A stretch of 64,000 nt of DNA, taken from assembly GCA_013265495.1 (NCBI GenBank), contig MU057651.1, positions 2,394,948 to 2,458,947 of the forward strand. Direction: 5' to 3'. Source of the stretch: Vicugna vicugna. Its lineage: Eukaryota. The notes under the pieces were generated by a model. It worked only from the letters and a program-made list of their open reading frames with translations, was not told where the DNA came from and did no database searches. Positions 8,466-54,023 of this stretch are shown here, in pieces (within the stretch, counting starts at the first letter, position 1; every line of letters begins with the position of its first letter). The position numbers and the translations under genes were made by a program.

Positions 8466-8599
8466 GGGGAGGGGGTAGCTCAGCGGGAGAGCGCGTGCTT
8501 AGCATGCACGAGGTCCTGGGTTCCGTCCCCCGGCACTGCCTCCAAAAATAAATAAATAAACCTAATTCCTTCCCTCCAAAAAAACAAATAAATAAAATA
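8466..8599 (+). mobile_element. Vic-1-like SINE
   Basis: ggggagggggtagctcagcgggagagcgcgtgcttagcatgcacgaggtcctgggttcc...aaataaataaacctaattcc plus A tail. Confidence 0.9.
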
Positions 8600-11810: not shown

Positions 11811-11925
11811 TTCTTGTTTTTACCTTTTTTTTTTATTTTAATTTTTTTAATGGAGGGACTGGGGATGGAACCCAGGACCTCGTGCGTGCCAAGCATGCGC
11901 TCCACCGCTGAGCCACACCCTGCCC
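11811..11925 (-). mobile_element. Vic-1-like SINE with target-site duplication tctcccttt
   Basis: Family head on the minus strand; tctcccttt occurs at 11802-11810 and 11926-11934. Confidence 0.88.
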
Positions 11926-41544: not shown

Positions 41545-41711
41545 GGGGCGGGTGTTGCTCAGGGGCAGAGCGTGTGCTTAGCATGCACGAGGTCCTGGGT
41601 TCCATCCCCAGCCCCTCCACTTAAAAAAACAAGCAAAAAATTAATTTAAAAAAATACATAAAGAAACCTAATTACCTCCCCGCTCCAAACATAATAATAA
41701 TAATAATGAAA
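41545..41711 (+). mobile_element. Vic-1-like SINE
   Basis: ggggcgggtgttgctcaggggcagagcgtgtgcttagcatgcacgaggtcctgggttcc...aaacctaattacctcccc...(aat)n tail. Confidence 0.9.
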
Positions 41712-46519: not shown

Positions 46520-46930
46520 GGAAACGTGACGTCACGTGCCATGCTGGTCAGTGTTGTAAGCTCACTCGGCATCTCTTCACCCACTGTGTCCCCTCAGTGC
46601 CCCCACTGGACCATGGCTGACAGTTACCCCATCGTTTTTACAGATGAGGAAACCGAGGTATAAAGAAGCTACGAGGCTTACCCAAGATCCCAGAGCTTAT
46701 GACGAGTGGAGCTGGGAGGAGGGTGTAGCTCAGGGGCAGAGCCCGTGCCTTGCGTGCATGAGGTCCTGGGTTCCATCCCCAGCACTGCCCTTAAAATAAA
46801 TTAAAATATAGACCTAATTACCCATCCTCTACACCCTCTGCCAAAATAAAAAAAAAAAAAAAGAGAGAGAGAGAGAGAGGAGCTGAGATTCCAAGCCAGA
46901 AACTGTGGCTTCAGAGTCTGGGCTCTGGAC
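46520..46930. mobile_element. MIR (opposite orientation to 46350-46470) split by a SINE
   Basis: tttttacagatgaggaaaccgagg...cttacccaagatcccagagct..[SINE]..gagattccaagccag...ggcttcagagtc. Confidence 0.72.
46714..46879 (+). mobile_element. Vic-1-like SINE nested in a MIR
   Basis: gggaggagggtgtagctcaggggcagagc... with an A/(GA)n tail; ggagctg is present on both sides (TSD). Confidence 0.88.
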
Positions 46931-47170: not shown

Positions 47171-47865
47171 TGATTCACAACGTTGGGCGAAGGTTTTGTC
47201 ACCGTGGTTCCTGTCGGTCCCGTTGGTTACTTTACTTGGCAGAGTGTACCTACTTCCTCTTACTAATCTTACTGACTCTGATGGAAATGACGGCTTTCAG
47301 CGTGACTACAGGTTATCCCAACCAGCGTTGGATTCAGCCATGCATCAGCGTTTCAGAAGAATGCAAATCAAATGTCTTGTTTCCTTTACCAAGAAAAATA
47401 CGTGCATGGCGTGAATCATGACCCTGACTGTGACGCTGGGGAAACAGAGCAGGGTGGATGGTGGCTACTATACTCGGTGGGAGGAACCCTTCGCCCCACA
47501 CGTGCACAGGTCTTTCTTGTTGAAAAGCTAGCCGAGACCTCTTACGTTCACAAACCATCCCCGTCAACCCTTCAGGAGCTGGAAGAAAACCTAAGAAATC
47601 ATGGGTCTGCTTTAGGACACATGGCTTATTATCATTATGTGATAAAAGGGATGGAGAATGATGGTGCATCAAAGAAACGAAAGAACAGAACTCTTTCAGG
47701 AATCCGTGGTCAGAAATCTGAGCATGCGTTCACTGGGTTGTGTCCCTACGTTTATCAATCCATGAAACAAACAAACAGAAAAGGTAGCAGCGGAAAGTGA
47801 GGTTTTTTTCAGGCTTGATAAGCACTTTCTAGGGATTTTTGCCAAACAAGGTCACACACACCTCC

Positions 47866-47985
47866 GGGACGCTGTCACCCCATATGGGCCAAATGGCTCA
47901 CCCTTAAGAAAACAGAACCGAACGAAACGGGAAGGGACTGATACGCTGAAATCCACTCCTCAGACGTTTCCACTGAGAAGTCATG
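47866..47985 (+). repeat. 120-bp direct repeat, copy A (upstream of exon 4)
   Basis: 108/120 identical to 49325-49444 by manual alignment, with no gaps. Confidence 0.95.
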
Positions 47986-48387
47986 ATCAGTCCTCACCTG
48001 TTGATGGGAGTGGTGCTTTTGGCTCACAGAACTTGGCCTCAGGCCACTCCGGAGGTGCTACAAGGTTGTCCCTGTGCACCCGGTGACCTGAACGTGTTCA
48101 GAGGTCCCCCAACTTGAAAGCGAGACTTGATAAAACGGCGTTTTGTGCATTTTCACACTCTGCCATTCAGCCCTTTGGAAAGGACAGGCGAGTGGTCCCG
48201 AACCCATGACATCTCCCGGTGGGTCGCTACGCCCGGAGCTCGGGGCCACGGTCGCACAGGTTGCACGGTCACCCCTGCTGTACGTTTAGAAGCCCTCTGC
48301 TTCCACTGGGTCGTTCTTTTTGCTGTTGTGCTGTTTTGCCTTGTTCCTGCGATGACACTGAGCGGCACCCTGTGTTGTCTCTTTCAG

Positions 48388-48648
48388 CCGGTAATGTTAA
48401 AGTAGAGACTCAGAGTGATGAAGAGAATGGGCGTGCCTGTGAAATGAATGGTGAAGAGTGTGCAGAGGATTTACGAATGCTTGATGCCTCGGGAGAGAAA
48501 ATGAATGGCTCCCACAGTGCCCAAGGCCACAAAGCTTTGTCAGGAGCCGGAGGCATTCGACTTCCGAACGGCAAACTAAAGTGTGATGTCTGTGGGATAA
48601 TTTGCATCGGCCCCAATGTTCTCATGGTCCACAAGAGAAGCCACACGG
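48388..48648 (+). CDS. IKZF1: IKZF1 exon 4 (VKVE SUMO site K58; zinc finger 1 [21 protein letters not shown])
   Basis: ctttcag| acceptor and G|gtaagg donor, 261 nt. Overlaps ORF 48219-48737, which contains the Ikaros F1 sequence. Confidence 0.98.
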
Positions 48649-49324
48649 GTAAGGCCTGGCGTAGACCCTCCGTTGGCGGCCTGGAGAGGTCCGTGGGGTG
48701 TAGCAGAGGAAATGCCCTTTTCAGCAAAGTGTTCTGATCCTGTTGCCAACTGACTGGCAGCATAGCAGTGGCTCCCAGTCAGAGCGAGGCGTAGCTTTCT
48801 TATCCTACATGAGCAATCCGAACCTGAAATCCACCCTCCCTGGCACCATACCCAAAAAGACACCTGGGTTGTTGATTTCTTGGGTCTTTTTCTTTTTTTC
48901 TTTTTTCTTTTTCTTTTTTTTTTTTTTGTTTCTGTTTTCCGTTATTTTAATATGATCTCCATCCCATAAAATTGTACTGCGAACTGGACGGTGGTCGAGT
49001 TTTTTAAATTTGATGAGGCTTTCTGGCAGCCAGTTCTGTTTAATGTTTCGCTCCTGGCTCTGTTTGGGGAGCTGGGAGTCACCAATCTGGCAGGCCAGGG
49101 AGGCGGCCTGGGGGCCAAGACTGGCTACTTCAGCCCACTTTTCCCTTCTGTGTCCACGTGCTGCTTTGAGGTGACAAAAACAAATACTTACTTCAATTTG
49201 ATCAGAACAAAAAAAAAATCAATTCAATCCTACAAAGTTAAAGCCATAAAACAGAACAGGAAAGGTAACAGCCTCACGCGAGCTCTGTCGAGGGCCGTGA
49301 GGTTAAACCCGCTGGACAGCGGCA

Positions 49325-49444
49325 GGGACGCTGTCACCCCACATGTGCCAAATGGCTCACCCTTAAGAAAACAAAACCAGATGAAACGGGAGGAGACTGA
49401 CACGCTGAAATCTACTCCTCAGACTTTTCCACTGAGCAGTCATG
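49325..49444 (+). repeat. 120-bp direct repeat, copy B (downstream of exon 4)
   Basis: 108/120 identical to 47866-47985. Confidence 0.95.
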
Positions 49445-53881: not shown

Positions 53882-54023
53882 NNNNNNNNNNNNNNNNNNN
53901 NNNNNNNNNNNNNNNNNNNNNNNNNNNNNNNNNNNNNNNNNNNNNNNNNNNNNNNNNNNNNNNNNNNNNNNNNNNNNNNNNNNNNNNNNNNNNNNNNNNN
54001 NNNNNNNNNNNNNNNNNNNNNNN
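53882..54023. other. Assembly gap (142 N) in intron 4
   Basis: Run of N. Confidence 0.99.

Follow-up and report, generated by a model that had tools for sequence, protein, structure and literature searches.

Introduction

A mechanism by which insertions are templated, of the synthesis-dependent microhomology-mediated end joining (SD-MMEJ) or MMBIR type, has been described (PMC2943611). Direct duplications and templated insertions of this class are also found as germline variants, the templated insertions being typically short and the search for their templates being confined to 100 bp (PMC8421209). The case presented here lies in IKZF1, of which exon 4 encodes zinc finger 1 (PMC5865415). Human T cells produce transcripts without this exon (PMC12896614), and its germline deletion in the mouse is harmful, with B-cell development being impaired (PMC5865415).

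In the window, i.e. the whole 64-kb stretch of DNA that was analysed, exon 4 stands between two direct repeats, A in intron 3 and B in intron 4. Copy A compares with the described events in having a template close by on the same chromosome and the same strand and an empty ancestral site in six other loci, and in having come with a small loss of target sequence (about 17 nt under the 120-nt core). We read the pair, with a probability of about 0.78, as the result of a single templated insertion of ordinary intron-4 sequence into intron 3, neutral since then and with no demonstrated role.

Materials and methods

Orthologous loci were searched in a protein collection, using as queries the exon peptide and a 172-aa open reading frame that covers exon plus intron, and the contigs of the matches were retrieved. 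Across the intron-coded part, neither protein search gave a match above about 73%. The intron-bearing loci of IKZF1 exon 4 are L027, which is red deer (Cervus elaphus, GCA_002197005.1), and the read assemblies L001, L002, L013, L014, L019, L020 and L023–25. L012, L015 and L018 align with the window in the exon and far downstream only, and are too distant to inform. The site of A is spanned by six loci representing five sequence types (L002, L019, L020, L023, L024 and L027). A maximum-likelihood tree was made from 2,509 aligned intron and exon columns, with the columns of the insert itself left out.

Results and discussion

A repeat search and blastn both identified A and B (Table 1) as ungapped direct repeats on the same strand, with 108 of 120 positions identical and a start-to-start spacing of 1,459 bp, exactly as the earlier note had described them. 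Within the 64-kb window, the self-BLAST match has an E value of 1.8e-42. The 12 mismatches comprise nine transitions and three transversions, corresponding to a K2P divergence of 0.109, and A and B agree without interruption over at most 27 nt. A third copy of the unit is lacking from both strands of the 64 kb (self-BLAST with 500-bp flanks, word size 7), and the window contains no inverted copy. The pair is a true direct duplication and no assembly artefact, which the earlier note had also considered unlikely.

The exon between the copies is delimited by an AG at 48386-7 and a GT at 48649-50, and its translation is Ikaros zinc finger 1. A ends 402 bp upstream of it and B begins 676 bp downstream, in agreement with the roughly 400 and 680 bp given previously; the length, phase and identity of the exon agree as well, and the coordinates bear out that the repeats bracket the exon whose skipping yields Ik-2. 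The exons for fingers 2-3 and for finger 4 follow downstream, near 54.3 and 57.9 kb. A run of 142 N bases is located at 53882-54023, about 270 bp upstream of the zinc-finger-2-3 exon.

Table 1 Features around IKZF1 exon 4, in positions of the window
Feature	Position	Strand	Description
Intron-3 patch	47757..47791	+	A/G-rich, resembles the intron-4 patch; orthologs in L002, Cervus, L024, L019 and L013
Spacer between patch and A	47803..47865	+	Ancestral intron 3; aligns at about 85% with L002; ortholog alignments end at 47859-47868
Copy A	47866..47985	+	Derived, lineage-specific copy of B in IKZF1 intron 3, from the repeat search, the empty orthologous sites and the sharing of B's lineage-specific changes
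IKZF1 zinc-finger-1 exon (exon 4, 8-exon numbering)	48388..48648	+	261 nt, phase 1-1; 84-98% identity per 40-nt window among four mammals
Lineage-specific insertion between exon and B	48824..49219 (L019 as reference, about 400 bp) or 48738..49219 (others, about 480 bp)		Jump in the alignment
Intron-4 patch	49241..49273	+	Ancestral, 51 nt upstream of B
Copy B	49325..49444	+	Source, ancestral intron-4 sequence; orthologous in L002, L027, L023/24/25, L013, L014 and L001; conservation equal to intron background

Copy number in other mammals, a point which the earlier note had left to be checked, differs between the two sites. The alignment of intron 4 with the window begins around 49220 and continues through B, which has orthologs in seven or more other mammal sequences, red deer among them. 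At the orthologous site in intron 3, A is absent from six of the six loci that cover it: their alignments end where the spacer ends and restart at 47984-48036, with 17-64 nt in between. The tree groups the window as the sister of (L002,(red deer,(L023,L024))) with a support of 100/100, which for the window is compatible with a basal even-toed ungulate; L019, L013, L014 together with L020, L012 and L015 fall outside this clade. A is missing from the sister clade as well as from L019 and L020 among the outgroups, and was thus gained on the window's own branch.

Two of the compared loci show peculiarities of their own. In L013, about 140 bp (2819-2959) correspond to window positions 47775-48295; this part of intron 3 measures about 400-520 bp in the window, L002 and deer. 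By its alignment, this short intron is a separate deletion which spans the site of A, so that L013 is uninformative for A. The exon-4 peptide of L001 is 99% identical to that of the window, with only about 91-93% identity in the exon DNA and about 65% in the intron; the low DNA identity indicates that the high protein identity is due to constraint or convergence and not to close kinship.

The direction of copying can also be read independently of the tree, from shared derived changes. A and B agree with each other and differ from at least four of six B orthologs in 18 columns of the core, about 11 of which are of the substitution type, including a shared 1-nt insertion. Private changes within the core are few, five being found in B only and four in A only, and the 90% identity between A and B compares with 72-79% between B and its orthologs. 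Because A shares the changes specific to the window's B and has few private ones, it is a copy of B made in this lineage only and late on the branch, after most of the branch substitutions. According to both the change counts and the K2P distance of 0.109 against a terminal branch of 0.21, around 30% of the branch follows the duplication. The event would then be very roughly 15-25 My old, near the camel-llama split, by a divergence estimate in which the window is assumed to be camelid.

The ancestral empty site reads approximately ...CACACCYNN GGGGGCTGGATTACGTG ATCAGYACTCACC..., or, with the junction given as a slash, about GGGGGCTGGATTACGTG/ATCAG. In the window, the core replaces about 7-17 of these ancestral bases and leaves the flanks untouched. 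The spacer upstream is orthologous intron 3, which places the beginning of the duplicated tract at about 47860-47868. At the ends of A, flanked by CACACCTCC/ and /ATCAGTCC, neither a target-site duplication nor a poly-A or simple-repeat tail nor TIR or LTR ends are found, and A and B gave no tRNA or Rfam match (Rfam at E<=10, ARAGORN). The empty site does resemble both ends of the core. On the left, the target GGG(G)GCTG or GGGGGCTG, i.e. the left part of the replaced segment, resembles the start of the core, GGGACGCTG; on the right, the target GTG/ATCA resembles the end of the core plus the flank of B, CATG/GGTCA (ATG/G(G)TCA). Both resemblances are imperfect and are read from the empty sites of other species. 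From these microhomologies at the ends, together with the lack of target-site duplication, tail and TIR, we infer that A is a templated insertion which arose during break repair or replication.

The sharp boundaries and common orientation of a unit that the earlier note could not name might also bring to mind two independent insertions of an interspersed repeat family specific to this lineage. We regard this as scarcely credible, as B is found in its orthologous place in mammals that are only distantly related and thus predates the lineage, while A carries about 11 of the derived changes specific to the B locus without any family-consensus pattern, which two independent insertions cannot give. 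The 64 kb contain only the two copies, and these lack the hallmarks listed above as well as a tRNA-like head. Searches with 20-22-mers gave 0 exact matches in viral and metagenome collections, a weak argument, as host DNA is rare there. The earlier note was right in not recognising the unit as a known repeat: no dispersed repeat is recognisable in it, and B is ancestral intron.

Dispersed elements do occur elsewhere in the window. A tRNA-Ala-like SINE family, which resembles the camelid SINE, is represented by five heads (46718-46791; 1546-1618, -; 8468-8544, +; 11851-11923, -; 41547-41620, +), and its members have an A-rich tail and a AAACCTAATTACC box. The copy at 46718-46873 lies within an old MIR-like element and is missing from all orthologous loci; the ortholog alignments break off at 46717 and continue from 46874, and their subject coordinates overlap, which is the pattern expected of a target-site duplication. 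Its head, the only tRNA-like hit near the repeat pair, belongs to an unrelated SINE.

As to the course of the event, we propose that some 105-120 nt of B were copied into intron 3 in the same orientation, now 1.46 kb upstream, once the lineage had separated from the other even-toed ungulates in the sample, and in about the last third of the branch. In intron 3, a 3' end that was broken or had stalled would have annealed to the start of B at a short imperfect microhomology (GGG..GCTG), synthesis would have copied B as far as ...GTCATG, and rejoining would have taken place at a TG/TCA microhomology. Such a course would belong to synthesis-dependent microhomology-mediated end joining or to MMBIR-type template switching. 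An RNA-templated version of the insertion is possible, and so is homology-assisted ectopic repair. Afterwards, both copies would have drifted neutrally to their present divergence of 10%. Some observations speak against this model: a tract of 105-120 nt taken from about 1 kb away exceeds the typical length and distance of Pol-theta or MMBIR events, the microhomologies are short, imperfect and in part reconstructed from other species, and pure microhomology does not account for the similar patches that lie roughly in register upstream of both sites.

The distance between the sites may have been smaller at the time. Between exon 4 and B, the ortholog alignments skip from 48737 (48823 in L019) to 49220, and the other loci advance only 19-175 bp there. 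Due to this insertion at 48.7-49.2 kb, B is 676 bp from the exon instead of about 260 bp, and if the insertion is the younger event, the two sites would have been about 1.0-1.1 kb apart when the copy was made. The left end of the inserted segment is T-rich (48880-48927), and an A-run is present at 49209-49218. Apart from the T-tract, it shows no repeat elsewhere in the window. It may be a reverse-strand retroelement fragment.

The precise right junction, where the end of B meets the ancestral sequence downstream of the A site, is also what a history in two steps predicts. Here, a tandem duplication of about 1 kb, reaching from the site of A up to the end of B, would have doubled exon 4 transiently, and a deletion would then have left the terminal 120 nt. 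Selection against a doubled zinc-finger-1 exon would favour such a secondary deletion. However, two precise events are invoked where one is enough, and nothing next to A is left over from a second exon copy or from additional intron, so that we consider this history unlikely.

The similarity upstream of the repeats, which the earlier note had called patchy, is statistically real, as 0 of 1000 dinucleotide shuffles of the window sequence reach the score of the two patches. It is not part of the duplication, however, since each patch is ancestral in the intron where it lies. They are low-complexity, A/G-rich 30-mers placed roughly in register, at 74 and 51 nt from the core. Together with the likeness of the empty site to both core ends, this register and the ancestral state of the patches would fit an ancient paralogy of introns 3 and 4 comprising patch, spacer and core. 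The core of intron 3 would then have been lost early, and what homology remained would have guided its restoration from B in this lineage, by ectopic gene conversion or by gap repair. Against this, the corresponding segments of the two introns show no similarity above shuffled sequence in L002 and red deer (731 and 494 of 1000 shuffles, respectively, reach their score), and the spacers are unrelated. An origin of this kind is in our view quite improbable. Judging from the alignments, the patches are a pre-existing A/G-rich resemblance, which may be due to chance or may be a trace of very old paralogy, and which may have favoured pairing of the two sites in the course of the templated insertion.

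Direct repeats on both sides of an in-frame exon that is naturally alternative (PMC12896614) invite a functional reading. Identical protein-binding or RNA-binding sites on the two sides could loop out the exon and increase skipping of the Ik-2 type, or the repeats could serve as a substrate for recombination or single-strand annealing (SSA) which deletes exon 4 in certain cells or alleles. More specifically, copies present in camelids only and bound by a self-associating RNA- or DNA-binding protein might shift the ratio of Ik-1 to Ik-2, or rare somatic SSA might give clones with a hard-wired Ik-2. Both the general and the camelid-specific version are, in our judgement, very improbable. Looping out of an exon by binding sites on either side is an established splicing mechanism. 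B, however, has no conservation peak: in a four-species profile, it scores 0.44, 0.61, 0.73 and 0.60 per 40 nt against about 0.42-0.75 in the flanking intron and 0.84-0.98 in the exon. B was therefore rejected as a conserved intronic regulatory element, its conservation being equal to that of the surrounding intron and CCAAATGGC not being conserved. The two copies have also changed at equal rates (four changes versus five).

The earlier note had further suggested that the YY1-like CCAAATGGC, present in both copies, forms paired sites which loop the exon. In the window, this motif is found twice where 1.04 occurrences are expected, and 31 of 100 shuffles reach two. The orthologous B sequences lack it and have CCAACTGGT, CCAGATGGT, CCCGATGGT or similar instead. 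The motif is thus new to the lineage and occurs at chance frequency, and the supposed pair of sites consists of one ancestral and one young copy, which speaks against the suggestion. Pairing within the pre-mRNA is not to be expected either, because the repeats are direct. Since human makes transcripts that lack exon 4 and six loci from mammals other than human lack A, no evidence ties A to skipping.

The proposal of recombination or SSA held up in one respect: a deletion of 1,459 bp between the copies would remove a single exon of 261 nt in frame. The substrate, though, is a poor one. Non-allelic homologous recombination (NAHR) and SSA call for long, near-identical homology of hundreds of bp, and the pair offers 120 nt at 90% identity with an uninterrupted run of at most 27 nt, on which homologous recombination in mammalian cells is inefficient. 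Gene conversion between the copies, also raised in the earlier note, has left no recognisable tract in A or B; the mismatches are spaced at random, and an identical run of 27 nt is obtained with P = 0.47 in a run-length simulation. The arrangement has moreover persisted long enough to diverge by 10%, and germline loss of exon 4 impairs B-cell development in the mouse (PMC5865415).

Conclusion

The repeat pair is an ordinary example of a known mutational process, and nothing indicates a function. Its value is that of a clean and datable germline templated insertion of which the source, the empty site and the junctions are all recoverable; beyond this, it has little significance. A tempting link from intronic direct repeats to the control of Ikaros isoforms, which the data do not support, is hereby removed. 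More generally, a repeat that cannot be recognised as a transposable element may be no more than a unique intron sequence copied locally. If another camelid has the empty site, A would become a small phylogenetic marker within Camelidae.

Among known systems, Alu-Alu exon deletions are similar in that repeats of the same orientation lie in both flanking introns and that recombination between them would remove the exon. Alu elements, however, are about 300 bp long and high in copy number, with documented deletion alleles, whereas A and B form a single 120-bp pair at 90% identity for which no deletion product is known. The focal somatic IKZF1 deletions of human B-cell leukaemia share with the hypothetical A-B deletion the loss of zinc-finger exons at the DNA level in the same gene. 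As a rule, they take out several exons at once, and illegitimate RAG activity at cryptic signals, rather than direct repeats, is regarded as their cause; the loss of exon 4 alone is not known to be one of the common types. Intronic repeats that promote skipping or circular RNA likewise occupy both introns around an alternative exon, but they need inverted copies that base-pair, and A and B are direct.

The closest likeness is to templated insertions of the SD-MMEJ or MMBIR type. Compared with the catalogued events, the tract of A (about 105-120 nt) and the distance to its template (about 1-1.5 kb) are larger, the microhomologies are imperfect, and with 10% divergence accumulated since, the mechanism is read from its traces. 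In common with them, A has a nearby template on the same chromosome, ends free of target-site duplication and poly-A, few target bases lost, and possible short microhomologies at both junctions.
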